Of a DNA stretch of 64,000 nt, positions 1,450-50,725 are shown piece by piece; the first letter of the stretch is position 1, and the number at the start of each line of letters is the position of its first letter. Below the pieces are notes generated by a model, which did not search any database, was not told the origin of the DNA, and was given only the letters and a program-made list of their open reading frames with translations. The position numbers and the translations under genes were made by a program. The stretch is from Oculina patagonica (lineage: Eukaryota). Location: NCBI RefSeq assembly GCF_052425735.1, contig NC_135761.1, positions 29,822,001 to 29,886,000 on the forward strand. Direction: 5' to 3'.

Positions 1450-4400
1450 CATCCTTCATTTTACCAGCAGCCATGTCAGTAATTTCTCTTTGTTTCGGCT
1501 TCCTTTGTCCCCGTGTCGCTCTAAAGAATAGGTGGAAAAAAATATAGCATTCTGTTTTAAATGAAAATTGTTTTCGCCATAATTAATAAACCATCTTTGT
1601 TTTGATCTCTCTTTGGATAAGTTCAGTGTTTCATTTTTAGAACAATAGGCTAGTGTTTAAGATTGTCTAAAAATGTTTAACTGGTGTTGTAAACAATTCC
1701 CACCGGAGCCCTTACTCTCAATCACCCCGGTTATAGTTAAGTTATGGGAACGAGGCGACTCCGAAGGTGAGAGAGAGCGAGAGCTCCAATACGGCAAGTA
1801 CAGAGGTCATCGCTGCGGGGAGGTGGGTGGGTCGCCAATGCTTCAGTCCTCCAGCACTTCACGAAAAGACAGAATACACGTGTACTGAGAAGCTATATAT
1901 ATACGTGTACATAGTCAGCGGCATGGCTTGCAGTTGCCAAAGTAACTGGGCACGTGGAATGGGAAATTAGGGTATTTGTTCGCGCGGGCCCCGGTGAGAA
2001 TAGTAAACAATTCCCACCGGAGCCCTTACTCTCAATCACCCCGGTTATAGTTAAGTTATGGGAACGAGGCGACTCCTACGGTACCCGCTCACGTAAGCCC
2101 CAAGCTAAGAACAGCCAACCTCGTTCCGATGCTCTCTTTCTTTTTGCCTTCTTTGTTAAGTGGGTGATTTCTCGGTACATTTTCTTAAACTTGAAAGAAA
2201 ACAAGAGTCTTCCTCCCAAAACTCAGAAAGCGTGTAAGCATTTACAATAACATAATAACGGCAAGACACTAGAAAAACATAGCAAAATATGTCACTAAAA
2301 CGAAACTAAAGGAAACAGCAACAAAAAAGCAAGCAAATGGGCATTTCTAACTGAGTGCTGGGGCCCGCCATGCGGGGTTTTCCCCCTACCAAACGCAATA
2401 TAAGCTACCAAAAGATTAAAGCTCGAAAAATACCGCAACCTCGAGATCAAAACCGAAGTGAGCTCCCCGGAGTCAACCAGGACCACGAAAATAGTATATA
2501 AACGGTGTCTAAAAGATAACATATAACGACTTGGAAGGGGAAAAACCAACCACACGGCGAGCCCGGAAATACCCCGTCTAGGACAGAGTGCAAGGTTTAA
2601 GATAACCCCTTTCGGGACAAGCCGACGCGGCGGTTAATCTCGCCTCCAGATACAACGATAAGAAGTGATCTTTTTGTATTTTTCCAGTTCATTTTTCCTC
2701 TTTTTTAGTTCTCTTTTCTTGTAACTCATCTTGAGTTGAGAACTTGAGTCTTTTTGTTGATCTCTTCATTTCTTTTCTACTTTTTTTTTTTTTTTTTTTT
2801 TTTACCTTCTCATTTCTTTTTCTTACTTCTTCTTTCTCTTATTTTTATCTCTTCATCTCTTTTCTTTTTTTTTTATTTTTTTTATTTTTTTCCTTTTCCT
2901 CTTTTCTTTTTCTTACTTCTTCTTTCTCGTATCTTTTTTATCTTTTCATCTCTTTTCTTTTTTCTTTTCTTCTCTCCTTTTCTTTTTCTGACTTCTTCTT
3001 TTTCTCATTTTTTTTAACTCTTCATCTCTTTTCTTTTTCCTTTTTTAACTTCTTCTTTTCCATCTCTTAATTTCCATTTTTTTTCTTTTTTGTACATTTC
3101 TCCCATGTTTAAGCTTCTCCTTATTCCTCCTCTTCCCGTTTTACGCTTTTTATTTTGTCTGTTCCCTAAATAATGTAATTAAACAATAACACAAGAAAAG
3201 ACAAACAATACCGACAGCTAACGAAGGGACAATAGGAAAGTAGAACAAAAGGTGAGATCGCAACGCAACCAAAAAGGTGTGACAAACTAGTTGAAGAGGT
3301 AAACAACAAGCAATGAAATATAAAATACGAGAAACCACGCCAGAAATAAACTAAATACTGAAATACCATGCAAAAATACCGATAAATAAAAATATGTAGA
3401 ACAAATACCAAAGAAAACACTAAGGGGGGATGAATGAAAACACGTGGCGTGAGACAACGCGACGAAAACTAAAGGCCATGAAACGAAATATAGGGAGAAA
3501 AAACCGAGTAATGAATAAAACCTAAAAAACAAACAAACAGACAATAAAACCAGATCGGATAAGTAGAACCCAGCTAAAAATACAGAAAACAGGTAAAGGG
3601 AAAAAAACGAAAAAGCGAGGGAAGGGCCGCGAATGAGACAAATACACCATAACTCGGGACGCGAAGGTAGCCGCTTCACAAACACCGCAAACAACACAAT
3701 GCAAAATAAGTAGAATAGGCTAAAACCGTATAACAAACTAAACCTGGTCGAGGAACGGAAGACTAACATGCGAGCGAAGACCCAGATAACAGACCTCGGA
3801 CTCTTCCCTGTAGGAATAGCTAGAGCGCTAGCGGGTGGTGTATTTGCAGTTGGCACGCTTGAAATAGAGAAGCAGCGGCGAAGTGAGGATAAACATGTTG
3901 AACGTATAAACGAGTCAGACGAGTAGTAGCCAAAACTCCAGGATAAGAGAACCAGGACTTGTGTAATGGGCAGACGGAGGGCGCAGCGATGACGCTAGAG
4001 TAAACGAGGAGCCGATGCAAAAGTACGCCAGCACTTCACGAAAAGACAGAATACACGTGTACTGAGAAGCTATATATATACGTGTACATAGTCAGCGGCA
4101 TGGCTTGCAGTTGCCAAAGTAACTGGGCACGTGGAATGGGAAATTAGGGTATTTGTTCGCGCGGGCCCCGGTGAGAATAGTTGCCGGGGATTCATCGACA
4201 ACTTTATAATGATCTGTAAAGCCCCGTTTCAACTAGCAACTTTAGCTTCGTTGTTTGTAATTTTAATTTCGAAGCGCAAGGGGTCTGTTGAAGTGACGGG
4301 AGGTAATTCAGAGATATTTTAACCTGAATTTCAGACCTCTTTCTCTGGTCACCTGCTCCCAAGAAGAGCAGATCTTCTCGGGAGCAGGCGACTAGAGAGA

Positions 4401-7400
4401 GACGTCTGAAATTCAGGCTAGCTTGTTATACGGTTTAGATATTTTGTGATGTGTTGTATTCAGACTGTTTTCGTCTAAAAACACTTGCGTAAGCCTAATA
4501 ATTCAAGAAAAGTGGTTGTTTTCGATTAAGACAGTTCGAAAAATCATAAAATACCAGGCATTGGAGTTCTGACATCGCAGTTCTAGCTTCGTTTTTTGGA
4601 AGAAGTCTCGACATCTCTAATGACGCCTATCAGCGTGGAAAATGTAAATCTCAAAAAAGAGGCATGTTTTCCTTGACGACTGAGGCATTTTCTTCCCTTA
4701 TAAATAGGGAAAATTTGCCCGACATACTGCACTTTTCAGGCTTTGAAAAAATGTCTGATTCTCTGGAGATATTTGTTTAAAGCTCTGGAGTTAAACTTTA
4801 GGGTTATGTCAGTACCAGAAACTGGTTCCTGTGTTTTATTCTTATATCATCAACTGTTTTGTCAATACTGGTCATGCATCAGAATTCTTTTTGTTTCTTA
4901 GAGATGTCGAGCATGGATGTTCTTTATCGTACTGGCGATAGAGCTGCTTGATAACCATTTGTGTCTTTTTAAACTCAATAGAATTGAATCAAGACTATCT
5001 TTATAGCTGCAGACGATATTACTGCTTTTAAAAGATGAAACTTCCCCTAGTAATGTATCTCGTCTTCTAAACGACTTCAATTAAAAGCCTACTCAGCCCT
5101 TCAAATGAACTCTTTTCAAATAAAGCATGTGGTTGTTGAATTAAATCACCGTTGCTCTACCGACAGAGGTTACGGGACCGGACAAGAGCAGGTCATCTCA
5201 ATTTCTTGGGTAGGTTAGAGCACGCTAAATATTAATTACCCAAGAGTTGATTTTCTACTTTCCAATTTCACGCTTGCTGCTCGTGTTCCTACAGCATTAC
5301 CAAACCTCCGCTCGCGTTTCTTTGACTCGATAGAAAACGGAAAATGTTTTCCATTCCTTACTTGCCCCCCCAAAAAATTGTCAAGAAAAAATCTGGTTTT
5401 GAAAGGGCTGAGGTATTTTTCATGTTAAAATTTATCGAGCGGGAGGTTATCTCCTCACCACTCTTAGGGATTTTCAAGTGCGTTGCGGTCACTTGAAATA
5501 TTTTTTCACAAGCACAACACCACAAGCTTCTTTTCGTTATCCACATACAAACATGATTGAATGATAGTTGTCAAGAAATTTGTTTAAACCATAAACGATA
5601 CGACCTAGTGGCTTTCGGGGAAATGTGTAAGCTATATATCTATTTGCATTCTGAGACCACGTGCATGCACTAAAGCGTTAAATGAGATCAACAATGAGCT
5701 GTGATCATTAAATATCACAAGGAAAAGATCTTCCCATCATTCCATAAGGTCGCATCGTTTGCAGTTTATTTTCTGACAAAGTTCCTTCATTCAGGTAGAA
5801 ATAAGTTTGCTTTGCCCTTTACCTTTCTTCAAGTACCAGAGGATAACACACCTCCCGAGCATCTTTGTTCTTTTTCAGAACTAGGTTAGTAAAAGAAAGG
5901 TTGTCCTTTAGCCTCTCGGAGAGAGCACGCGTACCATCAATACCAATGTAGTTCTCGCTCACATCCAGATAAGTCAAAGAAGTGTTGACTTTGAAGACCT
6001 CGGAAAGAGAACGCGCACCATCTTCACCAATGTAGTTCTTGCTTACATCCAGATTAGTCAAAGAAGGGTTGCCTTTTAGCCCCTCGGAGATAGAACGCGC
6101 CCCATCATCACCAATGTAGTTCTTGATCACATTCAGATTAGTCAAAATAGTGTTGACCTTTAAGACCTCGGAGAGAGAACGCGCACCATCATCACCAATG
6201 TAGTTCTTGCTCACATTAAGATTCGTCAAAGAAGGGTTGCCTTTTAACGCCTCGAAGAGAGAACGCGCACCCTCATCACCAATGTAGTTCTTGCTGACAT
6301 CCAAATTCGTCAAAGAAGGGTTGACTTTTAACGCCTCAAAGAGAGAACGCGCACCATCATCACCAATGTAGTTTTTGCTCACATCCAGATTTCTCAAAGA
6401 AGTGTTGACCTTTAGCGCCTCGGAGAGAGAACGCGCTCCACCATAACCAATGTCGTTCTTGCTGACACCGAGCTTAGTCAAAGAAGTGTTGACCTTTAAC
6501 GCCTCGGAGAGAGAACACGCACCACTACAACGAATGTCGTTCTTGCTGACATCCAGCTTAGTCAAAGAGGGGTTGACCTTTAACGCGTCGGTGAGAGAAC
6601 ACGCACCACCACAACCAATGTCGTTCTTGCTGACATCCAGCACAGTCAAAGAAATGTTGAACTTTAACGCCTCGGAGAGAGAACGCGCACCACCACAACG
6701 AATGTTGTTCTTGCTGACATCCAGCTTAGTCAAAGAAGTGTTGACCTTTAACGCCTCGGAGAGAGAACACGCACCACTACAACGAATGTCGTTCTTGCTG
6801 ACATCCAGCTTAGTCAAAGAGGGGTTGACCTTTAACACCTCGGAGAGAGAATGCGCACCACCATCACCAATGTCGTTGTTGCTGACATCCAGCTCAGTCA
6901 AAGTAGTGTTGATTTTTAATGACTCGGAGAGAGAACGCGCACCAGCATCACCAACGTTTTTGCCGCTCAAATCTAAATAGGTTAAGGTGGTATTGATCTT
7001 AAAAGCCTCGTAAAAAGAATAGGCATCGACAGCGTCAATGTCCAAAGTTGGATTAAAAGCTGCAAGGGAAAAGAACAGTTATTGACAACTGTTTACCGTA
7101 TTTCCTTTTATAAGAGCCGGGGTGATCATTTTATTTTTCACCAAGAGAGGGCGGTTATTCGAGGAAAGGCAACTAATTGATCGGAAGGGGGGTTCATTCA
7201 AATATCGCTTATCTCATTTAATCATTACTACAACAAAATTCGAATCTGATTGGTTGTTTTAAAACACGCTCTATTTTTTTCACCAAATTGGAGCACGGGT
7301 AGCTTCAGTGTGTAATAACAGTGTCTACTGCATGCGCGCTCTTTATTTGGTTCTTTATTGAGACTGAACACTCCTTTAATAAAGATAAAATGTTCGTTAT

Positions 7401-10400
7401 GTCACGAGCATGGGACAAAGAAAAAACCTAAGTCCCCGATGGGAATCAAACCTATGGCCTCCCAGACACCGCTTAGGTGCTCTAATCAGTAAGCTACGAG
7501 AGACTTGTGGTGAGCTGGAACATTGATTAGGTTCATACGTGACAAACATTAAAAACTGCATACTGCTAGGATCAGCAAAGTCAAAAGCATCGGTCGTCAG
7601 ATTTTGTTGATCAGTCGTATAGTAATAGTCCGAATTGGACTCTACTTGGTCATAATACCAAATGGTTGTCTATTCTGAGTGCAATGCAATATAGAGGTGT
7701 CAAATAGTAAATGCGAGACTTTGCGCGACGGCGAGACTGATATCTTTTCTGTGAGCCCTAGACCTTTTTAGCCTTGCAAAAGAAATTCAGACTTCGAAAA
7801 GGCGCCAAAGAAAAATTCGAGACGACGATACCCCTGAAATTTGGCTAAAATTATGCGAGAAACGCATTTTTTGAATGACCATTCACCACCCCTCAATATT
7901 TTGGAACTTTATAAAATGATATTTTGGCGATATTTTGGGTACTTAAAAGAGTAGAGCAAAAGATGATTTTGGTATCGACAATAATGGCGGTAATGGTAAT
8001 TGATTTGTCCTTATGAACATTATCATTTAACAAAGAAATATCTTTACCATCCAAAATCAGTGTTTCACTTTGACTTTCTCTTCCTTCCGTTTGAGTCCAG
8101 GAATCCACAGGAAATTTGATCTGTGTATCCTCCGTGGGAGCAGTTGGAATCTGAGTTTGGTCGGTAGCCTGGGTCTCCATCTCTTTAGTCCAAATTTCTT
8201 TGGTAGATTGAGTCTGAGTTTCCTCTTTACGTAAGTTCGCACTTTCGTCAATGCCTTGGATGTGGATTTCTTCAGAAGATGGAATCTGAGTTTCTGCAAT
8301 AGTTTGGTTCTCTATGCCTTCAACAGTCAGTGTCCGAGTTTGCTGAAGAGAGGGAGTGAAAGTACTTCCTTCAGCCAGGGTCTCACATTCGTCAGCTGGT
8401 TGGATCTGGGTTTCCTCAGCAGATAGGATTGCAGTTTCCCGTGTAGTCAGGGTCTCGTTTCTGTCAGTAACCCGAGCCTGGGTTTCTGCTGAAGTTAGAG
8501 TCTCACTTTCGGCAGCAGCTTGGGTCTTAGTTTCCTCAATTGATGGCATCACAGTTTCCTGTGTAGTCAGGGTTTGACGTTTGTCAGTTTGCCGAGTCTG
8601 AGTTTCCTCAGGTGGTTGTATCTGCGTTTTCTCTGAGGCAAGGGTCCTACATTTGTCAGTATCCTGGGTCTGGGTTTCGGCAGAAGATTGTATCAAAGTA
8701 CCCTCAGTAGTCAGGATCGTAATTCCTTCAGAAGCGGTAGCCATGGTTGAGCCATCAGTGTTTTCTAACGAATTTGCAACAGGAAAGAGAGTGTTACTTT
8801 TACGTTGGATGAATCCAACTGTAAACAGCATTCTCTGCCTTTGAACTACTGTAATTTTCATTATTTTTTGATGGCCATTGAAAACAAAATAATTACACTG
8901 TTTTCCTCCTCATTGACCAGAAGGCCTGAAAAGTGAAACCTTTGATTATCTTTTTGAAATTGGCTTGATACCAGCTTAGTCATGCCTCAGGGCTCTCAAC
9001 TCAATGCAAGGGATTGAGTCATCGCAACCCGTTCGCTTCGAATGGACAAATTTTGTCAAAACAGACAAAACTTCGATGGTGCCGTTATCCTGCCTATCTG
9101 ATTAATGTTGTATTTAATTTTCCCCAGGAACAATTAATTTGCATTTTGTAACGCGGATTCACCAATTGTTCGATAAAATTTACTGTGGTCTCAGGTCAAC
9201 ATCACCAAAAGAGAATAAATATGAAGAGGGATATCATCAATTGTGTTTTAATATATTCGATGTTTTTATGATGATAAAGGCAAAGAGCCAGTTAGAAGGG
9301 GCGACACAAAGTGAAACAAGGAAACCGGTCGGCGTGACGGAAGTTTGTAAGGATGGCGTATCTGGGAAATTACTCTTTTCGTACTAGTTGCAAAACCATT
9401 TAAAATCGCGGTCTGTGTTTAGGCACAAAGTTTGTAGTTTCAAATTTAATGAAAATGGTGAAAGAAAAAAAAAAGAAACTAGGCCAACAACCCAAACGTG
9501 ATATTTAAATGTCACACCAAAGCAAAAATTGGATTCTGGGATTATCAGTTTGGTCAACTTCCAGTGATTGCTTCCGGGCTTCCGACTGCATTTTTTTGTC
9601 CTTTAAGCGACCAATTGAAAAAAGAAACAAACTTTTTTATTATCCCAGAGTTCGTCCCGGCGACGAAGAACCCAAGACTGAAGAGCCGATGGACTCTGGG
9701 TTTGCGATTGAAACCTTGTCCGCCGGATGGGACCTGCGCCGAAGGCTTTACTTCAAAACATATCATATCAAGGTAGTTTGGGGTAAAATAGAGTATAAAC
9801 ATATTAGTCTCATAACCATAAAAAATGTTATTTTCAGCTTACTTGGCTTGTTCAAGAGAAACTCTTTGCATGCCAAGTAATCTTCTTCTAGAATAGTTGT
9901 TGTTAAATCTACAGATTCCACCTGAAATTTCTTCTTTATATCATCTGTCACAAGGCGTTTCTCAGTTATTGCATCAAGCCGACCAGAGCGATAGTCTTCC
10001 CAAAGGCGTTCAAGACTTTCCAGATTGTGGCACTCCACTGCAATTCTTAAACTATTCTCGTTTCCTTCTCTTGGTGTTGAGTTATGGATTATTTTCAGAT
10101 GCCGAATGTACTGAGGTAATTCCTCAACATCAGTTGTTTTTTCCTCCAAAATGTCCCCAGACATCAGTTTTGGTCTTTCGTCCTTTTCTTCTTCTGCCCA
10201 ACATTCTCCTTGAGTGTTTGTTAGGTTGCGTCCGTCTACGAATTTTTCAATGAGTTAGGTACATGAAACAAAAGCAAAATACTGTTATAGGTTTGACTGT
10301 AGGATCTCAAATTAAAGTCATCGTGAATTATTATTAATAAAATCAAGGCCGGCCAAGTTTCACAGTTTCTCCCCTCATGGCTCGACATCTATTCGCATAC

Positions 10401-13400
10401 AAAAGGTGAACTGCGTTAACGAAACAGATTCTGAATTCAACGATATCTCATTGCTGGTTAATTTTTACCATTGTTTATATCTCTTTGTGGTGTGTTTGTA
10501 TTTCCTACCTTTGTAAGTGAATGGACATGGTCTTGCAATTGCCTCATTTCAGTTATGATTCGTCTGTAACGTTTTACTTTCTTTTCCCGATAATTTAAGT
10601 CCGTACTGCGCAATCTCGGCTGCAATGTTTATGTGAGCCCACACGAAGGGAATGTTTACAAGCAAAACTAAAAATTCCGCGACAAACTTACCTTTTTCTT
10701 CATTATTAGCTCATCGGAACTTCTTGAACGAAACGAACTGTAATGGCGGACTAAAAAACGTCATGTATGCTGTCACCGAAGTGTAACGTTTCAACGAATT
10801 CAAAACAACAAAAAAAAAAGTTCACTATTGTCTTTGTTTTACCCGATGAATGATTTGTTTCACGGTGTTTAAAAACTTTACAACGTACTTGCGATATGCA
10901 TCAAGGAGGCGCAGCCAAGTTGACGATTGAAAACAAAGCGAGTGGTCTTATTTTAAGGCAATGACGTCATACATCGCCTTATGTAGGCAGGCCATGTGGA
11001 GATATGTTACGATGTGATGCGCGATTTCTCTATGAATAAAACCGAAGAGCACTGGGTTCTCTTCTTCATTGCCTCTGCATGCTTTGCATGCCGTGTATTT
11101 TTACTAGACAACTCAAAGAATTGCTTCCGGCAATGCCCAAAATGTTGGTGTTTTTTAAGCCAAATCACCACGACTTGTTTTCCCTTTGAACAGAATGGCA
11201 GTGCGTACGCGATGGTGGCCTATTAGCGAAGTAAATAACAGCGAGTAACCAACAGATTTGCGGTTTTCAGAGTAACAGAACACGACAAGTATCTACTAAC
11301 TTGTTGCAAATACAATTTTAAAGACTCTCTATCTTTCTCCTTCCACTCATCTTTCAATTTTCCTTAAAAACTGAAGCATTAACAAGTCTGCAGTCAGTAT
11401 TTACCGGTATCGTTACGGATTTATTCGTGAACTGATTCGTTCTTATCCTTTACTAACTGTGAAAAGTTATCACTTACAATTTACCGCAAGCTGGACAGTC
11501 ATCGGCTCAGGTTTTTCGGTGGTCTGGGTCTGAGTTTCATCAGCAGCTTGAGACTGGTTTTGTGGCAACAATTCATCATCATTTACTGTTGAGTCGTAAT
11601 TTACTCCTAAATAAATATAGTTTGGGAGAAAACGTGTTATATGATGTTAGCAATTGCATTTGTCCAATAACCTCCTTTGTTTTCATACTGATTTTTTCGA
11701 ACGCATAACCAGTAATAGCAATGCGTTGAACTCAAATTATTTGTCGTTGACTTGGTTTTGGTTGTTAAACAAGCGCTTGTTGTTTTATGACTTAATGTGT
11801 CTAACATAATTTTAAAATTGAAGTTGCCTAACATTGAATTAATTGTGAGCTCTTAGTTGCTGATAACGTTTAAGAACTAAAATCATGATATCAAATATAT
11901 TCAGATAACCAGTACCCAAAGCTGTTGATTGACGACTCACTTGAAATATCCATTAGGAACAGTTTGCAAGCCAAGTAGTCTTCTTCCAAAATAATAGTTT
12001 TCAACATCACGGATTCCACATCAAACCTCGTCTTAATATCATCTGTTAAAAGACATTCCTCGGCAACTGCATTTAGGTTTCCAGAACGGTAGTCTTCCCA
12101 CAGGCGTTCAAGAATTTCCAAGGTGCTGCACTCGACTATTATCCGTAAACTCCCTTCGCTTGCCTCTCTTATTATTAAGTCGAGAACTCCTTTCAAATAG
12201 TAATGGAGGCAGAGAGGAATGTTCTCAGACGGAATTTGTGCTGCAGTTGTCTTAAGAAATTGTTTTGTCATCTCAGACATTATAATTCGCTTGGCTTCTT
12301 CTTGTTGCATTGGATCTCTGCTTTTCATCTTTTGAAATATAACGGTGTTTATTTTGATTTCCATGGGCACAGTACCTTAAAGAAAATCAAAGCATAAAAA
12401 TTTGCTCTGGTATTTATATACAGGAAGAAAATCCATTATTTGCACGAACCTAAAACTGCTTTAAATTCAACGAACATCTTCAGTTGTCAGTAAATTCTAC
12501 AAGTGACATTTAAATTTATGGTATGCTAATGTTACAGTGCTAATTGAAATAGTTAAGAAATAATAGAAACTGTCAAAATTTCGATAAACAAAAGAGCGCT
12601 TTAACGAAAAGTAACATGTGCAGTATGCATGTACCAGAAATTTTTAAGTTAACTAATTTATCGCATGAATAAAAATTAAATATTCTACATTTCCAGTTTC
12701 CTAATAAATTGGTCTTTAAAATGTCAAAGTATTCCTCAAATGCTGCAAGTGAGTAGAAGAGATGTTTATACGAACCATGTACTCTGAAGGTACTGTACCT
12801 GAAGAGTAGTCAGTCAAAACGTTTATTTCCTGCGTCGGTATTGTTCTTCCTGTCGAGCTCTGACAAGCTGCAGAAGCATCTGACAAAATAAAACATGACA
12901 GGTTACTTGTAAGTGTAAAAACATTTCCTTTCATCCGGCACCTGTGTCTGCACATGTATTCGTACCTCAAGTGTTTAAGACAAATGGAGGTTGGTACCCG
13001 GACCTTGGTCAGTCGAATAAACAAGGACCGAATAAACAAGGACCTAACGTGACTGGATCACAATTGTCTTTGGGTCAGTTCACGATTTTTAAGGTCCTGC
13101 GTACTCCACCGTTACAATAACTTCAATTAACAAAACTTGTCATACTGATATATATATTTTTTAAATCATACTATAATTGATTGTGTGGTGGTAAGACAAC
13201 TATTATGCAAGCAAACTTTCTGCACCAAGGTGTTCTGTTACGAGAGTTTTCCAATAGCCGAAAAACAGACGAGAGTACTTCAAGGTCTGTTATTTGAAAG
13301 GCTCTGGAAAGGTATTGCTCATAAGAAGACAAGAAGCGGTAAAAAGTAAAAATAGATGTAGTTAGTGGATAGCACTTCTATGAAACAAAAACAACTTCTA

Positions 13401-15532
13401 CTGAAAAAAATATCATACCATGAGCCAGGCTGACCATCTTATCAATGAGAGATTTAGTTTGCCTCTCCCAACTATACTCTTCCCTGTAAAACGTACGCAG
13501 CGATTTAGACTCCTGAAGTCGCTTTCTTCTTTCTTTGCCCGAGATGTGCTTGATTGATTTGGCCCATACTTCGGCTTCATCAGAATCAACCACAAATGAA
13601 GAACCAAATGACACTTTACTTAGAGCTTCTCCAAATCCAGAGTTTCCACTAACAAGGATGGGTAGACCAGCTGATAAGGCTTCAAGACCTGTCAAACCAA
13701 ATGCCTCTGTTCTCGAAGGCATTAATGCAAGATCGACTTCGCAAAGCAAGTTTTTTAAACTTTCCCGGCTTTGTAAAAAGCTTCGTACAGTTAGGCGTTG
13801 AGCAGCGATGCCACACTCGAGCAAACGATTTTTTACCTCGTCTTGCTTTCCATTAGGTGCACCGACGAAAACAAGATGGGTGCCATCTAACATAGCAACA
13901 GCTTTGGCTGCAATGTCAAACCCTTTCAGTTCAAAATCTTCTTTATCTCCACGCCCAAAAACAAGGACTTTGAACTTTTTCCTTTCATCATCAACCTGCT
14001 TGACGTCGGAAAACTCAGCAAAAAGTCCAGGAGTAAATTCAAAGACTATTTGATCTTTCTTACACCCGCGAAGATAAGAGCGAAAAGCGTCACTCAATTT
14101 GGGTCCAACTGTTACCACAAAGTCAGCCATTTCACAAAGTTCGACTTCAGTTTCATGTTTTTCCTCATTAACAGAAACTGGATTAGAATATGTCTTATAC
14201 ATTCCAAGTTCCTCAGGGGCTGTATGAACAACCTGAACCCATTTACAATTGTGAGACTCCCTTATTACTTGTGCTTGATGTCCGAGCTTCACACCATGAC
14301 CAACAACTACGTCAATTTGCAAATCATCTGGTGGGAAGCTCAGCCATTCAAGCTCATCGTAGCCAGGTCGCCTTTTTGCCTTGACAAGATCAATCCGGTG
14401 ACTAAGAGCAGCTTTTTGGTCTTCGTCGTTGCATTGTGGGACAAAAATAGTGACATGTACGTCAGGGTCTTTTGCCACGTTTATGGCTAACTCTCTGTTT
14501 ACGGTGGAAAGTCCTCCTTTACTTGATCCCCATTCTGATGCCAGGAAGGTAACTCTTAATTTCCTTGACGATGTGTCAGGACCACTACTCTCTTGATGTT
14601 CTTCTACACTGGTCATAAGAGGACAGCTCGAGGATTCTGATTCCTGAAATAAATCATGCAAACTTGTAACATCCAAACAACGTTACGGTCTCGTTTCCTA
14701 ATGGACGTAAAGAATTCAAATAGCTGTATTACAAAGATAAGATCCTGATCGCATGAGCTCTTATCAGAGTATACCTTCCATGTTTAACTGTACATGCAAT
14801 ATCTGATTAACATGTGTTTAAGGGTTCAAACATCAAACGTCTCATTTACAGTTTTATGCATAAGACAAGCGTTTTAAATGTTACTTTCTCGAGGACCCTC
14901 AGGAGAATTTGACTGAAGAACGCAAGAAAAGACTTGTTCAAAGGCGTACCCGAAAGCACCTTTAGCTTTTTAAATGCTCTCCAGCAATTGACCAAGTGCG
15001 TCCATAGCTCGATAGACGCACAGCAGCTTGAAGTGTAAGCAAGAATCAATTTTAATCGCCAATTTAAACCAAAATTCTCTTGATAAGGCTTCTGTTTCAC
15101 TGTCCGTATGTTGATGCTTCGTGGGGCTAGAAAAATTACACTGATAGTAATGTTGGGAAGAGCTTTTCTGTCGTTCCTTATTTTTAAAACAACATAGGTT
15201 ATTTTTGCCCATTAAGCGAACAAAACATATCTGCTTAGTGGTGATAAAGTTTGCATATGGTACACGTCAATTTATGGAGCTCGGGAGTGTGGTTGCGTAC
15301 TTGCGCTATTAAGGATTCACTGGCTGTGTTATAACGCTTTTTTGATACCTTAGTTAACGTGTTTATTAGGCCTCTTTCAACTTGAAGGTAGCAATAAAAT
15401 ACTTTCTGTAATACCCGAATTAAGTGATCTAGCGAATTCTTTGTGATTGCATGGGTTGACCCACAACATCATGAGTCCAGTGTCCCATAATTTTAAAAGG
15501 TTAACAATAAATACCTTTGTTTGCAAGGACAT
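1450..15532 (-). CDS. Multi-exon NLR-like immune protein, copy 1 (GT4 glycosyltransferase - 2x TRADD-N-like - T/E/Q octapeptide repeats - RI-like LRR; no NACHT); 3' end probably continues left of 1450
   Basis: Phase-compatible GT-AG exons read on the minus strand: 15532-15515 (MSLQTK), 14643-13419 (GT4), 12879-12799, 12375-11941 (TRADD-N-like 1), 11606-11478, 10235-9843 (TRADD-N-like 2), 8764-8048 (octapeptide repeats), 7059-5823 (LRR), 1520-1450. No in-frame stop across about 1435 codons. Every exon has a counterpart of the same phase in the paralog at 32.6-52.8 kb. Confidence 0.8.
1689..4181 (-). mobile_element. Non-autonomous split-direct-repeat element (Ngaro/PAT-like tyrosine-recombinase retrotransposon derivative)
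   Basis: 74-bp repeat at 1689-1762 and 2003-2076; 154-bp repeat at 1851-2004 and 4028-4181. Minus-strand order is A1-interior-B1A2-spacer-B2. No TSD; a GT dinucleotide is shared by both ends and the internal junction. Confidence 0.75.
2668..3160. repeat. Polypyrimidine (T/C) low-complexity tract with internal duplication
   Basis: Almost only T and C; the block ttcttttttcttacttcttctttctc...tcatctcttttc recurs near 2813 and 2903. Confidence 0.85.
4320..4420. mobile_element. Small hairpin MITE with TA(A/G)CCTG...CAGGCTA ends
   Basis: About 47-bp imperfect inverted arms with a short loop; no TSD seen. Confidence 0.6.
5823..7059 (-). CDS. Exon encoding about 13.5 ribonuclease-inhibitor-type 28-aa LRRs (NLRC3-like), copy 1
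   Basis: 84-bp tandem units encoding SLTxLDVSKNxIGxxGARSLSEALKVNT. Acceptor ttgcag borders 7059. AG|gtaaag donor at the apparent stop codon. Confidence 0.92.
7398..7587 (-). mobile_element. tRNA-derived SINE-like repeat (degenerate)
   Basis: Reverse complement of the spacer plus tRNA-like arm seen at 37930-38106. Confidence 0.65.
8048..8764 (-). CDS. Exon encoding Thr/Glu/Gln-rich degenerate 8-aa repeat region, copy 1
   Basis: ORF 7893..8861; acceptor cgttag borders 8764 and donor G|gtaaag borders 8048. Octapeptide register xEETQ(I/T)Qx. Homologous exon at 44777-45430. Confidence 0.8.
9843..10235 (-). CDS. Exon encoding TRADD-N-like domain 2, copy 1
   Basis: ENSLRIAVECHNLESLERLWEDYRSGRLD...ILEEDYLACKEFL, a clear paralog of the 11941-12375 exon. 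Phase 1-1 splice sites. Confidence 0.7.
11941..12375 (-). CDS. Exon encoding TRADD-N-like domain 1, copy 1
   Basis: Motif EGSLRIIVECSTLEILERLWEDYRSGNLN...ILEEDYLACKLFL resembles metazoan TRADD-like N-terminal domains (recognised from the motif, not searched). A 435-bp exon of the same length lies at 48105-48539. Confidence 0.7.
13419..14643 (-). CDS. Exon encoding GT-B fold glycosyltransferase family 4 (Glycos_transf_1, MshA-like) domain, copy 1
   Basis: ORF 13378..14676 contains EWGSSKGGLST, VVHT, FGR...KGFD and the GT4 ExFG...E signature PSRTEAFGLTGLEALSAGLP. Acceptor tttcag borders 14643 and donor G|gtatga borders 13419. Confidence 0.92.
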
Positions 15533-18374: not shown

Positions 18375-21300
18375 ATGTCCATAAAACAAGATGGTTTATC
18401 GCAATTGTTGTCATCTTACGGATCCGATGAGTCTGATAACTCAAGCAGTGATAAAGAAGACTCTGATGAAAAAGAAAAGAAAACAATTATATCCGTAAGG
18501 AAAGGAAATTCGCACGAAGCTTGCGATGGTTGTCATGGTTGTGACCCGGCCGCGGGCTGTGAGGACTGCAGTGAGCAAGATAGCAAGACTGAAAGGTAAG
18601 CTTATGAAGTTTATAAAGGTCTTCTAAATGCAATACTCAGACACATTTTGAAACTGTAGTTGGTCAGTATAAACTGCAGGCCTCAACTGCATACTCCGTA
18701 TTAATTGTGATTTCATTTCATATCCCCCCCCCCCCCCATTGATGAACCGTAAGTTGTGCCGACATAATCCCCCCTAATTTTCAAAAACCCCTTCAGAAAA
18801 AAGGCAACTTTTCCCTAACTCCTTCAGAAATATTCGAAAGATCAAAGAATTCCGACAGGGCGACCCCCTCAGAAATGACTATCAAAATCTCGTCTATGGG
18901 GGGAGGGGGAGGGGGTGGATATAAAATAGAATGGCCCTTAGTGCTGAGTTTGGACCACTTTGGACTGGGTGACTTTGGTTGAAGGATTGCAGAGGAAGAG
19001 GATTGTTCTTTACAACTTGCAAGTCTGCAAGACATGCCAGCCATAATTTCTGGTTGGCCTGAAGAACACATTGGTTAGCCTAAATAGCAATCTGGTAACC
19101 TGCGATCAGGCTTTCTTTTTTTTCGCGGCGGAGGGAAGCAGAAAAAAAGGAAAGCCTGATACAATTACTTGTCAAGTCGTCTGCCGCCCACTAATTAAAG
19201 TATCTGTCAACGTTGTCGAGAATGTCGGCAATGCCATCAGATAAGCGTGCATGATTAGCGCCTTCAGATAATATTTTTACTCTCACAAACGTGTTTGAAT
19301 TACCCTTTTTGAACGAGCTGATCGGATGGTTTTTAAAATTTGTTTTCAGCAAAGGCTGATTTGTGTAAGGATCAGACATTTCAAGGTTGTAGTTTTCGTC
19401 ACTGGCACGATCGTCTGGCATCTTTGGTGGTGTGATGTAATAATCTTCGACACCATTGGTGATAGATCACGCTCTTGGCGAATCCCGTCGGAAGCACCGC
19501 CAAAACATCTTTTCTTTCACAAACTATTCATCGAATACACTCCCTTTGTTCGTCTTTAAATGTTTTGTGAACAAAACTGTTGAGAGATTTTCTAAAAACT
19601 AGAAGAACTTGCTCTCTACTTCATTCTGCTCGACACCCGCCATGATAACAATCATCTATGTGCGATATTTTTGGACCGGAAATTAGACTTGAACTCGTTT
19701 AGCCAATCAGGATAGAGTTCTAATGTTGCCTTTTGTTTTCTGACCAATCAGAAAAAAGTCCAGATTCTGGACTTTTTACAGACGACTCGACAAGTAATTG
19801 TATCAGGCGTTCATTTTTCCGTTGACCCCTCCGCCGCGAGAAAAATAACGCCTGATCGCAGGTTAGCAATCTGGAGCCTATAGTAGGCTAAGATAGCTTG
19901 CAGGTAGCCTTTATATTGGGATTTGGGATTTCTGGCTCATATGGCTCATGATTCATATACCGGTAGTAAGATTAATGTTTTACTCTAAAACGTTTGGCAA
20001 AGAAACTGAGAGTGCCAAACCTTTGTTAAATTTATTAGACGTTCTGACTGTAGACAACGTCTATCGTCTCGAAATATTGAAGTTCGCACATTCATGGCAT
20101 AATGGCCTTCTCCCTAGAGTATTTGACCATATATTTAAATATGCTAGAAATATGCATGGATACAACACAAGATATACAGCCAAAAAGAATTTTTATAAGT
20201 ATAGAGTAAACACTAATGTAGGAAAGCATTTCGTCTCTTTCATGGCAATTGATATTTGGAAAGACCTTCCATCTTCTTTGAAAGACTTAAGTGTGTTAGC
20301 ATTTCCCAAGCAAATAAAATGTTACCTCCTGTCAGAACAAAAACTAGGTAAATTGATTTTCCACTAAACTCAGTTTGTAAATTCGTAAGTCCTCTTACTT
20401 ATTGTTTCTTATTAATCACCTTTTTTCTATTCTATTCATAACATTAATTGTACGGAGAGCTAACTTGAAAACCTACCGGTTCATTTAGCTACACAGCTCA
20501 ATACTTAATTAACTACAAATTCCTGTAATATCTTATTTCTATCTAATTAAGAATACGAACACAACTGTAAACTTTAATATGATCGAGCTAAATAAAAAAA
20601 TAATAATTATTATTATTCATGCAAGTCATGCAAGCCACCCTGGTTAGCCTACATGACACATTGGTTAGCAACAACAACAACAGCAATCTTTATTGTACTC
20701 TTCTTGCCTTTTACAATTTACATTTCAAGATATTTTAAAAATAAGAGTTCTGGTTGCCTGGAATAACAATAGTCTGGCTAGTGGAGCCAATCAGCCAATT
20801 CATAAAAGCCTCTATAGTTAGTTTTAAGGTAGCTTACAGTTAACCTTTAAATTGGTATTTGGGATTACTGGCTCACACGACTCACCGGCTTGCATATTGT
20901 CCACACTCATGAAGGAAGCTCAAAGTTTAAAATAAATTACAAGACTATTTAACAGTTAGTTGGCAACTAGCTAGCTAACTAGCTTAATTTATATTTGCTT
21001 AAGCCCTGAGCCAACTATCAAAATCTGATAGAAATTGAGAGGGAGCCATCTTACTGTTTTAGCATAACCCAGAGACTGATCTATTCAGTAAAAAGTTCAG
21101 TGAAAGTGGTTTATGTACAATAATTTTATATGAGCTTCACACATTTTTCTCAATCCTATTAGTTAAAAACACATAGTTGATGTGTAACATGTATTTTTAG
21201 AATTCACTGATAGAGGATTTCACTATTTTAAATGACAGTTTGTGTCTTGTTATTACTGAACAGAGAGATGTTACCACTGCCTAGTAGAGTACTTGACATG

Positions 21301-24300: not shown

Positions 24301-27256
24301 TATCTCCTGTTACTTTCAATCATTTTGACAACCCTACATACATATACATGCATACTCTGCTAATCAGTAATTGAGTGTATGTTTCTTCTTGACAGTTAAG
24401 GCCAGTGTGCATTTTGAGAGTCTTGTGGTATCAGTAGCTGAATGTGTGTCAGCTGTGACATCACGTGAGGTACACATGATACCATGTGACGAGTTACACG
24501 TGAGTGTATCCAGAACAGTACCCATTAGACATTACTGGATTGAGCCAATTGTACAACAGCTTAGGAATGGACTCAGCACTGTGCACAGGTAAACACTTCA
24601 ACAACAATGTTGTACACTATTTGTCTATAAAAGTAGACGGATGATGTCCAGAAGATGATTCATGGATTCATGGAATGTACTCACTCAGTTAGATACAGTA
24701 CCACATTTCCTTGATTGATGCCCCTCTTAAATAGTCACCCACTTCTAAGGAAAATAATCAAATTATTGCCACTCCTCAATAAGATGTGTGCATTCACAAG
24801 ACTCTAGGCCAAGTACTTTGCAAAAGCAGTTTGAAAATATGACAAATAACTGTGTAGATTCTTTAAGGTACAACAATTTAACATTTGTTTGTTTGTGTGC
24901 AGTGTTAGATGCATCATACTCGCTGTACCATTTTGAAAGTCCCCCTCAAATAAGCAGCCTTCCCAAAGTAGTGATACAATGTAAAATTTCATGTTTGTTA
25001 GCAAGTACCGGATAGCTAAGAACCTCTAAAAGTGGAAACCCCAAAACGTACATGTAACTTGACTTGTTACGGGAAATAATGAACTTACAGATGTTAAAGA
25101 TGTTAGGCTACTGAATTTGTTTAAGATGACCCTTGTTCCAAAGGTAGTATGTTACTCTTCTTTAGTGTCATATTAATTAAATTATTTTCCCAAAATTGTA
25201 ATCCTTTTTATCCCATTTATCTTGAAAACCTTTTTATTTTATTTAGATAATTAAACCCACACTTGGTGGTTACACATTTAGCTACCTGAAGGTAGCAACA
25301 TTTAACAGTAAAAGTAGTACCATTTGAACTTTACAGTAATGCAACCTGCCTTTTTTTACATTTTTAGTTTTGTGTCTGCCTTGCAATGGCCTGAATTGTA
25401 CACAAATGATGAGAAAACAAGGTAATTAATAGTGTTTATACAAACTTTCCTTTCAGCTCAATAAAATATCAATAATTATTCTTCTTGAACTGACTAATAT
25501 CCAATTGCTATCAATGTTATTTCTGATTGTGGTGTTAATCAAGTCATTTCTGTGTTTTTTTTTTTGTCTTTTTTGCAACCTATCACATTCTGTGCTCTTG
25601 AAGGCTGTAAACTTGTCTTACAACATGTGACATGCGATTTTATGTATTTCAGATCATTTGTAGCACTGAAAATCATGTCAGAATACAAGAAGGTAAGAAA
25701 GCAAACTTTAGTCAAACTATACACAATGCATTCAGCTTGTTTGAAGTATTAGCTCTTCCTTGAAGATGCACTGTACAGGCACAGATAATGATATTGGTAT
25801 GGGTGAAAACTAACCATTGTGTGGTTTTGGTTTTCAGTTCAAAGATGTTGTTGATTTAGTTAATGAAGTCTTTCAGGAATTTTCTCTCCCTGCATTCTAC
25901 AAGGTACGTACATTATACTGATCAAATCTAATTTTACTTTTTTTACAGTAACAAACTTGTATCTATGTTATGTTTTTGATGTAGTTAAAAATACTCTTCA
26001 TACATGTAGTTTTTAGTGTATAAAAATTTAATCAACATTTTGTGAGTATGTCAGTGCTTTTTGGAATGTTTAAATTAAAGGAGAGTTGGGGCAGATTGAG
26101 ATTAGAATACATGTACCCTTAAACTTAGAATACTATTAACTCTATGTGCTGTTGTATGAGGGTGGCCTACTTGTTTTTTGTCCCCTTTTTCTCCTTAACT
26201 CTTGTGCCAACCTTAATGTACAACTTGCCATAGGTAGAATTGGTTTTAATTTCAAATGTGACTTCATTTATGTTTGTACATTTTTACACTGTAGGATCCA
26301 TCATTCCATGTGAGTGTTGCATGGTTACTTGGTGACATCTGTTCTAAGAGTACACAGGACATACAAACTAAACTTCAGGTAATATATGTACCCAAGCTGA
26401 TCACAGGGTCCCCACTCACTGACTCATTCCATGGATGTTCAAATCTTAGAAAACCAATAGTAACTTTTTTAAAAGTTAACAAATTTTTGACTCTTAAAAG
26501 AGTCAACAATTTTATTACCAAGTTCTCAGGTTAAAGCCAAAAAGAGTCAACAATTTTATTACCAAGTTCTCAGGTTAAAGCCAAAAAGAGTCAACAATTT
26601 TATTACCAAGTTCTCAGGTTAAAGCCAAAAAGCCTGCATCTTGTCAAGAACAATCTGCATGTTTGAAGTCATTTCTTGAAATTGCAAACATCTTCTGAAA
26701 TCAGGAGGGCTTAGTAATGGGGTGGCATAAGAACCATGAGTTACATGTACTTAAAACAAAAATATACAATGTACAGGGCATTCAAAGGATGAACATATTG
26801 TAAAACAGGCTACTACAAGCGGTATTGTACAGAGTTTATTGTTATCAATGTATTGGGTGTTATTGTGAAATAAATAAAAAATTAAACAAACAAACAAACA
26901 AACAAATATAGACAGGGCTATGATTTTAAATTACAAAATACCCATATGATAAACATTGATGATTTATAAACAATTTATCGTCTTGCATTGCAGTTGTTTA
27001 TCATTTTAACTAATAAACATGATTAGAATATTGAAACCGTTTATTCCAAAAAAATGCGACTGTTTCTATGTCAGCATGTCCAAACCGTGTCTATGTTAAC
27101 ACGTTGAGTGAACAACTTGGGACCAGAAGAGCATTTTCCTGGAACCAGTAAAATTTGCCGAGCACCCACTTTTTATTGCGGTTTTCACTGAAATGCGAAC
27201 TCTGACATTCAATCCTGAACCAACGGTTTACGCCTTTTGCTGCCATCAATCAACTT

Positions 27257-32760: not shown

Positions 32761-34200
32761 ATAGTTTATTCTATAATGTGTTCAATTTCAACAACGTATT
32801 GTGTGGGGAGTGGGATATATCCTTAAATTTTAGTTTACAATACATGAAGTGAAATAAAATGTAAAATGTAAAATATGTACACTAGCTATATATCAAAACA
32901 AAATAGAAAGAAATAAAAAGAAAAAAGGAAAGAAATATGAAAAAATTTAATTAAGAACTCGCTGAGAGGCTTTGTTTTCAGAGTTTTCTTACAATTTGCA
33001 TGACTCTCGCATAGTTTTAAGTCTTTGTCTAAAGAGTTCCATAGCTTGACTATTCTGTAATAAAAAAAGACCTTCGGCCAGCAGTGATTTTGAACAGGGG
33101 AATATTCAGTTGTTGTGAATTTCTTGTGGTTCTGCTTGATATTTGTTGCCTTTTGACAAATTGTGAAGTCAGATAGGTCGGGGCGCAGCCCGTCATGCAC
33201 TTAAAAGCGAAAACAGCGTCTCGGAGGTAAAGCTGTTTTTTTTTTTTTTTTTACGGGAAGCCACCTCAAATTCTTGAGTGATGGAGTTATATGCTCAAAT
33301 TTATATGTACCACTATAAATTACCGAGCAGCGAAGTTCTGAACGAGTTGAAGTTTTTGCACATTACAGGCAGTGGTGCTGGACCATACAGTAGAACAATA
33401 GTACAACTTACTGAAAACGAGCGCGTTGATGATAGTCACTAGTAGGTCGGAGTTGAATGCGTGCTTTGCCCGATTAATTTGAGCTAATTTACCCATACAG
33501 GATGAAACTGTCGCTAAAATGTGGTTTTCAAATGTCAGAGTGGGGTCGAATGTTACACCAAGATCTTTGATGGACTCTGACGGCAAGAGTTCCTTTCTGA
33601 GCAGCGAAAGCTTGAAATCAGATAGTCTACGGATCATCGGTCGGCTGCCGATGATCATGAACTTTGTCTTTTCAGGGTTGAGCAGAAGACAATTATCTAA
33701 ACACCAGTTACGGATTACATGTAAATCTTTTTGGATAGTGTCCTTTGCTTTGTCAGCATCACCAACTTTGAAAGACAAAAGAAGTTTGGTTTCATCCACG
33801 TAGCATTCGGTTGAACAACTTTCGCTGATTGCTGGAAGCCCCGAGTACGCTGCGTTGAAAGACGCCACAAGAAACGGATAGCGTCTGATAGCGTCGAGTT
33901 TATGCGAACAACTTGAGATCTTTGAGACAGATAGCTAGAAAACCGTGTTAACGCAGATGAGGAGAGGCCAATGTTCTTAAGTTTCTTTATTAAAAATTTC
34001 ATGCTTGATACTGTCGAAGGCCTTGCTCGTGTCTTGGTACACTACTGCTGTAACTTTAGTTTGATCAATCGCTCGTAAGATTGCGTCTGTAGAGGATATT
34101 AATGAAGTTTTGGTTGAATGCCACTTCTTGTTTCCGCTTTGATTAGATGCAAGTCTTTGTTTTTCAGTCAAATATAGTGTGAGCTGATCAAGTGTAATTT
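32761..34200 (-). mobile_element. Degenerate non-LTR retrotransposon fragment (CR1/L2-group reverse transcriptase)
   Basis: Frameshifted ORFs with HSTKTSL, DTSKAFDSI, YVDE (YADD site), LNPEKTK, KDLGVTFD, LQLVQNFAAR and KLWNSL. Lies in the last intron of gene copy 2. Confidence 0.88.
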
Positions 34201-44776: not shown

Positions 44777-45430
44777 CTTCCAAAGTCAGGGTTTTTCTTT
44801 CATTTTCACTTTCACTTCCACTTTCACTTTCTTCCATTTGAGTCCGGGTTTCCTCAGGATCTTTAATCTGAGTATCCTCCGTAGCCAGGATCTCAACAGC
44901 CTGGGTCCAGGTTCCCTCAGCAGTTGGAATCTTAGTCTGGTCAGTATCCAGGGTCTCCATGTCTTCAGTAGCTTGCGTCGGTTTTTTTTTGCCAGACTGA
45001 GGCTCAGTTTCCTCTTTAGGGCAATTCGTACATTCGTCAATGCCATGGGTTTGGATTTCCTCATGAGATGGAATGTGTGTTTCTGCAGTAGCTTGGGTCT
45101 TGGGGTCTTCTACACACTGTGTCCGAGTTTCCGTAGCAGATGGAATGTAGGCATTCCCTACAGTCAGAGTCTCACTTCCGTCAACACATTGTGTCTGGGT
45201 CTCCTCTAGGAATTGGATCACAGTTTCCTGTGCAGTCATGGTTTCACTTTTGTCAGTAACCCGAGACTGGGTTTCCTCAGGTGGTTGAATCTGCGTTGTC
45301 CTTGAAGTCAGGATTCCACTTTCTTCAGTAGTCCGGGTCTGGGTTTCTTCAGAAGATTGGATCAAAGTCTCTTCAGTAGCCTGGATCGTAAGTTCTTCAG
45401 AAGTCGTGATGGATGAGCTATGATTGCTTT
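44777..45430 (-). CDS. T/E/Q octapeptide repeat exon, copy 2
   Basis: ORF 44757..45464, homologous to 8048-8764; splice sites conserved. Confidence 0.7.
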
Positions 45431-49231: not shown

Positions 49232-50725
49232 ACTACAATATCCATAGTTTACCTATCTGCAGTGGCAAGTCATGAAGGTCTGTATCCGCGCTGTATTCTC
49301 TGCCACAAAATTGTCGGAAAAGTCCAAACTTTGAGATTTCCGAAGGTGTCCCGACCAAAACACGATCAGTTTGCAAAGGAGAGATGTAATTATGGTAATT
49401 ATATTCCACGCTTTTATGGTGAGAACAATGCGTTTTTATGAAGGACACGATTGTTTATGCCCAATATTATTATGACTACTCTGAGTTGCAGAAACAAAAA
49501 TAAATTGAATAAAAATTAGCTCATAGACTTCCTACAATTCATATAAACGTATAACGCCAAGTGCTGTTTTAAATTGGTTAAAATATCAAAGAAACAGGAA
49601 TTTTTTTTTTAAAAAAAAATCACGCGCACGCACCCATATTTTTATCCAGTCATGAATATCTCGTACAGTTGTCGATGTCAGTCGTTGCACTTCGTGCATA
49701 CGCTTTAAATAAATGCATAATGATGAGCCTAAGGTGTCCCCCGCGACCTTAATGTTCAGTAGTTTTTCTTGGGAATTACATTTAGCAGAATTACAATTAG
49801 TAGTTTTTCTTGGAAATTATTTTTTTTGTTACTTCCATTGCCTGGAGTCAATATACCAGTCGACAAATCAGACATATAAACAACTGTGTGCTCGAAGGTA
49901 CGGTACCTGGTGGGTGCTTAGACTTGACTGCCGTTTGTGGAATCTGTACTGTTCTTCCTGTTGAGCTCAAGCAAGATACAGAAGCATCTACCAAAAAAAA
50001 AAAAACATTACAGTGTACTTGTCATTCTAGTTTGCAAACTATCTTTTTAAGCTGATTTTGCACATGTACTATTACACTGTTAGCTCTAAAACAAACTAGG
50101 AGGAATTTCCTAAAAGCTTTAGGATTCCTACTTTTTTTAATCAATGCTTAGCATGAAATGTTACCAGCAAACGCTGTGTTTAAGTGTTCGCTGTGACATT
50201 CCGGTAATAGCCAGCAAGGTTTTTGCTCTAAATTTGCAGTATTCTAGGTCGTTTTAATTGAGCTAGATTATTAAGGAAATAACCTCAACTTGAATCGATC
50301 ACTTTTATGATTTAAAATGTTATTCTTTTTGTCTGATTATATATTGGCAATAACCTATTATTAAATTTAAATATAATGTTTTCCTTTTGTTTGCAGTAAT
50401 TCAACATATTTCACATATAGGGATATTGTTCGTATCTTTGTCTCAACATCACTGAGATTATCGAAGTCCCTCCTCAATTTCACATGGATAAAAGCGCAGG
50501 TTCAGTGTTACATTCCCAACTTAAAGCAGATCAGGCTAAATGTTGAGGTCAGATTTTTCATCATGCCACCAGGCTGGCAAAATTCGGCAACTGCGTAACA
50601 AAGAAAGTCATATAATAAACTTCTAATCCCGGCTTCTTATCAACACTTTTTAGCTACTTACTAGTAAATAATTCATTTTCAGTCGGTCTATTAGTGAACA
50701 AAGTTGATACTAAAAAGACACCTAC

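Follow-up and report, generated by a model that had tools for sequence, protein, structure and literature searches.

Proteins in which an N-terminal GT4-family glycosyltransferase is followed by TRADD-N and leucine-rich repeat (LRR) domains, with no NACHT domain, have been published from cnidarians, cephalochordates and hemichordates (Kaur et al. 2021, eLife 10:e70394; PMC8195603). In that paper the GT4 domain is interpreted as an effector acting on invader molecules. A second described group is formed by the "tripartite" glycos_transf_1-NACHT-LRR genes of the coral Acropora (DNA Res 2025, PMC12314368). Here we analyse a gene on the minus strand of a 64,000-nucleotide stretch of the Oculina patagonica genome (NC_135761.1, positions 29,822,001 to 29,886,000; the whole stretch is called the window), and in particular its repeat exon at 8048-8764, which encodes an array of eight-residue units. 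As modelled, the gene has the domain order GT4-conflict, two TRADD-N, repeat, LRR, with no NACHT domain. We think it reasonably likely that the repeat serves as a disordered and acidic tether, tolerant of changes in length, which links the GT4/TRADD-N part to the LRR part; it would have arisen by tandem duplication, and selection would act on it mainly through reading frame and composition.

The modelled gene agrees with the published GT4-TRADD-N-LRR type in its domain order: a conflict-clade GT4 domain (PF20706) at the N-terminus, TRADD-N (PF20694, here twice) after it, LRRs after TRADD-N at the C-terminus, and no NACHT. It also lies in a tandem paralog cluster, as expected of a lineage-specific expansion. 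It differs in its periodic Thr/Glu/Gln linker, here a phase 1-1 exon, which goes unmentioned in the passages of that paper that were consulted. With the Acropora tripartite genes it shares an N-terminal GT-B glycosyltransferase, a C-terminal LRR of the RNI (ribonuclease inhibitor) type and membership of a clustered, expanded coral family, but those genes have a central NACHT where this one has two TRADD-N domains and a disordered repeat. The Acropora genes are the analogy behind the original prediction that the repeat sits where the NACHT domain should be and may replace it. That argument goes no further than the analogy. NACHT-less GT4-TRADD-N-LRR proteins had already been published by Kaur et al. 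The repeat is the linker of a NACHT-less family, and nothing indicates replacement of NACHT by function or by descent.

The repeat exon, its parts and its paralog in the window are as follows.
8048-8764, minus strand: repeat exon, 717 nt, phase 1-1, encoding residues 766-1004 of the 1417-residue gene model.
8205-8756, minus strand: periodic core of about 23 octamers in a single phase (exon residues 3-186), defined by autocorrelation and phase tracking.
8048-8204, minus strand: C-terminal tail of the repeat exon, in which local phase tracking finds that the octamer phase slips and the periodicity fades.
8358-8477, minus strand: block of 40 residues (5 octamers) that is found neither in the aligned paralogs D, E, C and F nor in the foreign homologs (alignment A1, pairwise gaps).
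44777-45430, minus strand: paralogous repeat exon of the second gene copy, 56% identical, with a ratio of nonsynonymous to synonymous substitution rates (dN/dS) of 0.86.

The in-frame reference of the exon (window 8049-8762, minus strand; 238 codons) is its sole open frame and is rich in Thr, Glu and Gln. Residue autocorrelation of this 238-residue translation was compared with 1000 shuffles. For lags of 8, 16, 24, 40 and 48 residues the z values were 3.3-4.4, 4.9-5.0, 6.8-7.7, 5.5-6.6 and 7.0-7.1, respectively, and the largest shuffle value at any lag was 4.4-4.7; the repeat of 8 and 24 residues described in the original prediction is therefore real. The paralogous exon gives a z of 9.0 at lag 24. 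The octamer consensus is [T/S]-[E/D]-E-T-[Q/E]-[T/I]-[L/Q]-[T/S/A], with six of the eight positions significantly non-random. Octamer phase is constant from residue 1 to about residue 185 (23 octamers), where a one-residue slip occurs; the paralog keeps its phase as far as residue 160 or so. A register that had been called unbroken thus holds for the first 23 octamers and fails over the last 50 or so residues. The 24-residue super-period is dominant but irregular, with one two-unit block and strong signals at lags 16 and 40 as well. Tandem Repeats Finder does not report the array in 8048-8764 at the DNA level and finds a 24-nt period only in the paralog (45345-45403), so the periodicity of this copy was demonstrated by autocorrelation instead.

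The repeat can be followed into the codons. At a lag of 24 codons the nucleotide identity is 0.575, 0.538 and 0.562 at codon positions 1, 2 and 3, against baselines of 0.25, 0.28 and 0.23 (0.226 for the third position). Pairs of identical residues at this lag also share the same codon in 35 of 47 cases (74.5%), compared with 35% at control lags (p = 4e-8). The periodicity is therefore present at synonymous sites too, as in a tandem repeat made by DNA duplication, and the third-position signal together with the codon sharing places the repeat signal in the DNA, with duplication or homogenisation of 24/72-nt units. Judged from these sequence data, the 8/24-residue periodicity would mainly be a still-visible trace of 24/72-nt duplication and not the product of selection for a periodic protein pattern; the array would have been built as a 24-nt unit, and also its 72-nt triplet, underwent successive tandem duplications. 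Transcript evidence came from contigs of four public runs that cover exons only, and one of these RNA contigs hints at a 72-nt duplication within the repeat exon. We also discounted an origin from the neighbouring LRR array, whose 84-nt period differs from 24/72 nt and in which no resemblance to the repeat was seen.

The repeat exon is evolving quickly. All ten paralog pairs give it a dN/dS of 0.56-0.86; when the window's own two gene copies are compared, the values are 0.39 for the GT4 exon, 0.19 for TRADD-N1 and 0.45 for TRADD-N2. Indels between paralogs include one of 40 residues (5 x 8) and others of 1, 2, 3, 4, 6, 10 and 11 residues. One RNA contig, with 99.7% identity across 380 nt, has a 12-nt (4-residue) deletion at 8430, and in one foreign homolog the periodicity peak has moved from lag 24 to lag 21. 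The original prediction had named indels that are not multiples of eight, together with absence of periodicity, among the signs of a neutral linker; the indels are indeed off-register, while local periodicity survives. Selection would keep an open frame, a polar acidic composition and a length within a broad range, and would apparently leave exact sequence, octamer register and single motifs free to change.

In composition the exon is 21% Thr, 14% Glu and 11% Gln, with 51 Thr and 18 Ser among its 238 residues (Thr plus Ser 29%; Pro, Thr and Ser together 33%). Acidic residues make up 19% and hydrophobic residues 17%, and the net charge is -28. At 0.399 the mean hydropathy falls short of the charge-hydropathy boundary (0.456), which puts the exon on the disordered side. 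AlphaFold2, run on the repeat exon with a 13-sequence alignment, gave five models with a mean predicted local distance difference test score (pLDDT) of 49.5 and a predicted template modelling score of 0.23. In these models 153 of 238 residues fall below a pLDDT of 50, none of the five contains strands, and the sole helix (residues 89-118, modest confidence) lies inside the 40-residue block at 8358-8477. The models indicate disorder. A mucin-like secreted domain rich in Pro, Thr and Ser was dropped as a candidate because these residues come to only 33%, the acidic content is 19% and the neighbouring domains are of cytoplasmic types.

From these data we infer a flexible spacer or tether between modules. 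The linker would tether the GT4 domain and two TRADD-N domains (the effector/adaptor part) to the C-terminal LRR (the sensor part). Among the roles offered in the original prediction, spacer is the only one that fits the disorder, the relaxed constraint and the register-breaking indels; the LC8-binding, beta-polymer and NACHT-replacement parts of that interpretation are not supported. Several observations weigh against the tether. Periodicity at 8, 16 and 24 residues persists in homologs that are only 32-37% identical, and this persistence, together with a frame that is open in five of six copies in the genome and in all foreign copies, implies some constraint; dN/dS values under 1, as low as 0.56, depart from strict neutrality. 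When the alignment is shallow, AlphaFold2 can overlook a new kind of repeat fold or a fold that forms only in oligomers, and Thr and Ile are enriched at alternate positions, which would also suit a beta-strand formed on partner binding. Finally, "spacer" is a default reading, and tethering is putative.

The exons that accompany the repeat exon in the gene model (5819-14676, minus strand) are listed here.
5819-7059, minus strand: downstream LRR exon (PF13516 LRR_6, E = 6.8e-59), an RNI-type array ending at the stop codon; joint 7059|8048.
9843-10235, minus strand: upstream TRADD-N2 exon (PF20694, E = 2.2e-06); joints 8764|9843 and 10235|11478.
11478-11606, minus strand: small linker exon between the TRADD-N exons, containing DETQTQTTE; joints 10235|11478 and 11606|11941.
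11941-12375, minus strand: TRADD-N1 exon (PF20694, E = 5.4e-09), placed by joint 11606|11941, a loose end and a frame check.
12799-12879, minus strand: probable small exon in the interval between GT4 and TRADD-N1, placed by AG/GT borders and frame.
13419-14676, minus strand: GT4-conflict exon (PF20706, E = 1.3e-89), placed by the donor GT at 13418-13417 and by frame.

Canonical minus-strand GT..AG joints are present in the RNA contigs at 7059|8048, 8764|9843, 10235|11478 and 11606|11941. Because the contigs are confined to exons and have these joints, the four runs are RNA and exon 8048-8764 is spliced; its borders had been drawn exactly, as joints 7059|8048 and 8764|9843 confirm. The repeat frame is continuous with both neighbours, TRADD-N2 upstream and the LRR exon downstream, and RNA joints directly support the spliced series of exons from TRADD-N1 through to the LRR exon. 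Tandem Repeats Finder reports the 84-nt period in the LRR exon. The PF20706 match (13378-14676) covers profile positions 2-385 of 385, and its E-x7-E motif is intact (EAFGLTGLE). Beyond 12377 a 30-nt loose RNA end matches nothing in the window or the genome when up to 3 mismatches are allowed; it resembles the 3' end of exon 12799-12879 with 6 mismatches, and for that reason it probably derives from a paralog or allele. From the splice sites, the frame and this paralog-like end we infer that the GT4 exon is in the same transcript. Joined, the seven exons form a single open frame of 1417 residues, and the same gene order is found at locus L015 of Desmophyllum pertusum. All six introns are phase 1 and almost every domain is one exon, so the repeat exon may be duplicated or lost with the frame kept; this layout permits exon shuffling and agrees with the duplication of the entire repeat exon that is seen independently in two lineages (L015 and L023). 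Over 7268-8003 and 10580-10947, within introns, RNA contig depth runs to thousands, with many variants and loose ends; this RNA probably comes from abundant expressed repeats or transposon fragments rather than from the repeat gene.

In this genome the repeat exon is confined to a tandem cluster on contig C4 (29.78-30.15 Mb) of six copies, all on the minus strand and with conserved AG and GTAAAG borders. The frame is open in five of the six and in every foreign copy; one is broken by a frame change. The broken copy (L002/L003, G000:C4:29777862-29778579, minus strand) is the nearest paralog, 81% identical over its first half; it is split between two frames with a TGA, owing either to pseudogenisation or to misassembly. 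Sequence matching the 8358-8477 block is visible in the open reading frames (ORFs) of this copy, at C4:29.778 Mb. In the second gene copy of the window the GT4 exon (50691-51804, minus strand) runs in two frames, with a short deletion near the position of first-copy GT4 residues 157-160 and a premature stop ("...HTAPEKT*"). To judge by its sequence this glycosyltransferase may be dead, and the repeat, TRADD-N and LRR exons of the copy remain open. A seventh cluster member (L021:8058-8393, C4 at about 29.7357 Mb, minus strand) has the exon start and a tail of about 90 residues without a periodic core. It is transposon-rich, with a reverse-transcriptase ORF downstream and no LRR within 13 kb (L018), and may for these reasons be dead.

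At the three nearest loci outside the six repeat-bearing copies, no NACHT lies between TRADD-N and LRR, a result uninformative on replacement: L020 leads into a DEAH helicase-RBR ORF, L021/L018 holds the core-less exon and transposon debris, and L022 has no gene-attributable ORF of at least 90 aa within about 9 kb downstream. L020 (G000:C12:19656000-19665999, plus strand) has two TRADD-N exons and then a 1708-aa ORF in which DEAH-helicase motifs and an RBR-type zinc-finger tail can be recognised by eye; with these motifs it would give the genome a further TRADD-N architecture.

A HMMER search against 1.84 billion representative proteins matched eight clusters only. One of them, P0007 (843 aa, Ig-domain, with an ERTQVLGF/EGTQGLES repeat), was set aside as a low-complexity chance match with no shared context. 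The other matched clusters are single-exon ORFs in coral-type DNA, with one annotated protein, from GCA_029204205.1 (D. pertusum). In every foreign locus with readable flanks the repeat exon follows a TRADD-N exon, and at L016, L017 and L023 it precedes an LRR exon. The D. pertusum locus has GT4, TRADD-N, TRADD-N, two repeat exons and then a different C-terminal region. Since the repeat is found in only a few coral-derived clusters, it is not core to the GT4-TRADD-N-LRR architecture. Pfam assigns no family to either repeat exon of the window, the alignment A1 profile has no match among PDB sequences at E <= 1, and look-alikes in the ESM Atlas (top score 0.77) are unnamed, uninformative clusters. 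As a sequence family the repeat matches nothing described in these searches, and in kind it is unremarkable: a disordered repeat linker, specific to a lineage, within a receptor family already known. On the coral-type metagenome contig L016, an ORF upstream of the TRADD-N exon (4145-4792, plus strand) contains about four Cys/Asp/Glu-rich repeats of about 45 residues with the motif CRLFNPDGDCSHCGCDDEQQ; there is no Pfam entry on record for this ORF.

The four TQT motifs of the repeat exon, reported in the original prediction along with a TQTQT in exon 11478-11606, are all present, as is the TQTQT. They stand at exon residues 30, 54, 182 and 223.
8667-8675, minus strand: TQT site 1, SSAETQTQD, kept in 7 of 12 homologs and the only site without a listed unfavourable flank.
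8595-8603, minus strand: TQT site 2, PPEETQTRQ, with prolines at -5 and -4, kept in 4 of 12 homologs.
8211-8219, minus strand: TQT site 3, RKEETQTQS, with a charge-dense flank (K-E-E before the anchor), unique to this copy.
8088-8096, minus strand: TQT site 4, DSWTQTEG, with a bulky Trp at -2, unique to this copy.

It is unlikely that the array is a functional modification or docking platform, used foremost for O-glycosylation in cis by the fused GT4 domain and otherwise by S/TQ kinases or LC8; if it were, a NACHT-less receptor would convert ligand sensing by its LRRs into a covalent or multivalent signal. Multivalent docking of LC8 (DYNLL), in which TQT-bound LC8 dimers would zip two chains together and give a NACHT-like dimerisation, we regard as very unlikely. 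Four TQT exceed the shuffle mean of 1.19 (P = 0.029) and the linker exon adds its TQTQT, the region is predicted to be disordered as LC8 clients are, and the genome encodes canonical LC8. Two tandem intronless 89-aa LC8 (Dynein_light) genes, L012 and L013, lie 2.9 kb apart on C3 (G000:C3:13496456-13499571, minus strand). At site 1 the -4 residue is Ser and the -2 residue is Glu, the latter as in the dynein intermediate chain. Against this, the paralog exon has two TQT (P = 0.17), the count ranges from 0 to 4 among homologs, and the repeat consensus E-T-Q-T/I itself yields TQT, so the sites are not independent events. We judged the flanks by the rules of Jespersen et al. (2019, PMC6607443), by which a hydrogen-bonding residue at -4, a positive residue at -3 and Pro, Asp or Glu at +2 are favourable, prolines before the anchor, dense charge and a bulky residue at -2 disfavour binding, and many TQT peptides fail to bind. 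Sites 2, 3 and 4 each carry one of the unfavourable features; site 1, with S/A/E before the anchor and Q after it, has only the favourable feature at -4. No site has a positive residue at -3, and a strand-breaking +2 residue (Glu) occurs at site 4 only. The exon thus resembles ASCIZ/ATMIN-type clients (PMC6607443; Biomolecules 2023, PMC10046861) in being disordered with several TQT and many S/TQ sites, and differs from them in that its flanks mostly lack the favoured features and carry disfavoured ones, and its sites are unconserved; LC8 binding is putative. A complex prediction of two LC8 chains (L012:1498-1764, minus strand) with two copies of exon residues 19-66 (score 0.02, mark 0.34) is counted neither way. 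The turnover of sites, half of them unique and three of four unfavourably flanked, weakens the support for LC8 multivalency that the original prediction had drawn from them. We consider it highly improbable that the array is an S/TQ cluster domain, on which phosphorylation by ATM/ATR/DNA-PK-type kinases would couple the protein to signalling of stress or damage. The exon has 16 S/TQ sites in 238 residues, with a maximum of 8 per 100; the remaining 1179 residues of the model have 5, and shuffles of the exon give 7.5 +/- 2.2. Such domains are usually defined by at least 3 sites per 100 residues, with which the array agrees in a formal sense only, and kinases of this type prefer S/T-Q in acidic contexts. 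The enrichment, however, simply follows from the repetition of ETQ, homologs do not conserve the individual sites, and we know of no link between TRADD-N/GT4 proteins and the phosphatidylinositol 3-kinase-related kinases.

Glycosylation in cis would make the Thr-rich array an O-glycan acceptor of the protein's own N-terminal GT4-conflict domain, serving as a signal or an autoinhibitory switch, by analogy with serine-rich-repeat adhesins; we take this to be improbable. The strong GT4 match with its E-x7-E motif, the abundance of Thr and Ser, and the order GT4, TRADD-N, repeat shared with D. pertusum all agree with it, and intracellular glycosylation of Ser-rich repeat proteins is documented (PMC5578698). 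In the adhesins (PMC5578698, PMC6291802), a tandem repeat rich in hydroxy amino acids likewise stands by a GT-B gene, but the adhesins are bacterial, secreted, Ser-dominated and glycosylated in the cytoplasm by separate enzymes before export, whereas here the glycosyltransferase is in the same polypeptide, Thr is 21%, acidic residues are 19% and glycosylation is putative only. GT4-domain enzymes are located in the gene clusters of Ser-rich-repeat adhesins. GtfA belongs to family GT4. On the other side, Kaur et al. read GT4 as an effector against invader molecules, the repeat exon of the second window copy is open despite a frameshifted GT4 exon, and Thr positions in the array have no special conservation at a dN/dS of 0.56-0.86. 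An oligomerising beta-solenoid or cross-beta polymer, with three 8-residue strands per 24-residue turn stacked as a triangular solenoid or an amyloid-like fibre, seems extremely improbable. The 3 x 8 periodicity and the Thr/Ile at alternate octamer positions 4, 6 and 8 suit it, and short amyloid motifs are used by fungal and bacterial NLR-type proteins. Against it stand the absence of strands from all five AlphaFold2 models, a net charge of -28, a hydrophobic content of 17% and roughly one aliphatic residue per octamer at most; the conserved, inward-facing hydrophobic ladder of stacked strands typical of such repeats is not predicted. Indels of 1-4 residues, not whole coils, put intact paralogs and one transcript allele out of register; the super-period is irregular, one cluster copy has no periodic core, and the profile has no PDB relative. 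On these grounds the beta-polymer proposed in the original prediction is set aside, and the disordered tether is the reading that we favour.

Two further features lie between the two gene copies of the window. A perfect 44-nt tandem repeat occupies 26496-26632 (3.1 copies, 100% identity), and ORF fragments resembling the reverse transcriptase of non-LTR (non-long-terminal-repeat) retrotransposons are found at 33320-33868 (minus strand) and 19948-20367 (plus strand).

Corals and other marine invertebrates have a large class of GT4-TRADD-N-LRR genes that are putative immune receptors, and the repeat linker bears on the question of how modules may communicate in such proteins without a NACHT domain. 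The seven-exon, all-phase-1 gene model can be used for expression constructs. With LC8 or solenoid oligomerisation losing support as a mechanism, the TRADD-N domains or the LRR itself remain as candidates for assembly. The stretch between adaptor and sensor is a transcribed, fast-evolving, length-tolerant linker exon of a few coral lineages, with no sign of a fold or a conserved motif.

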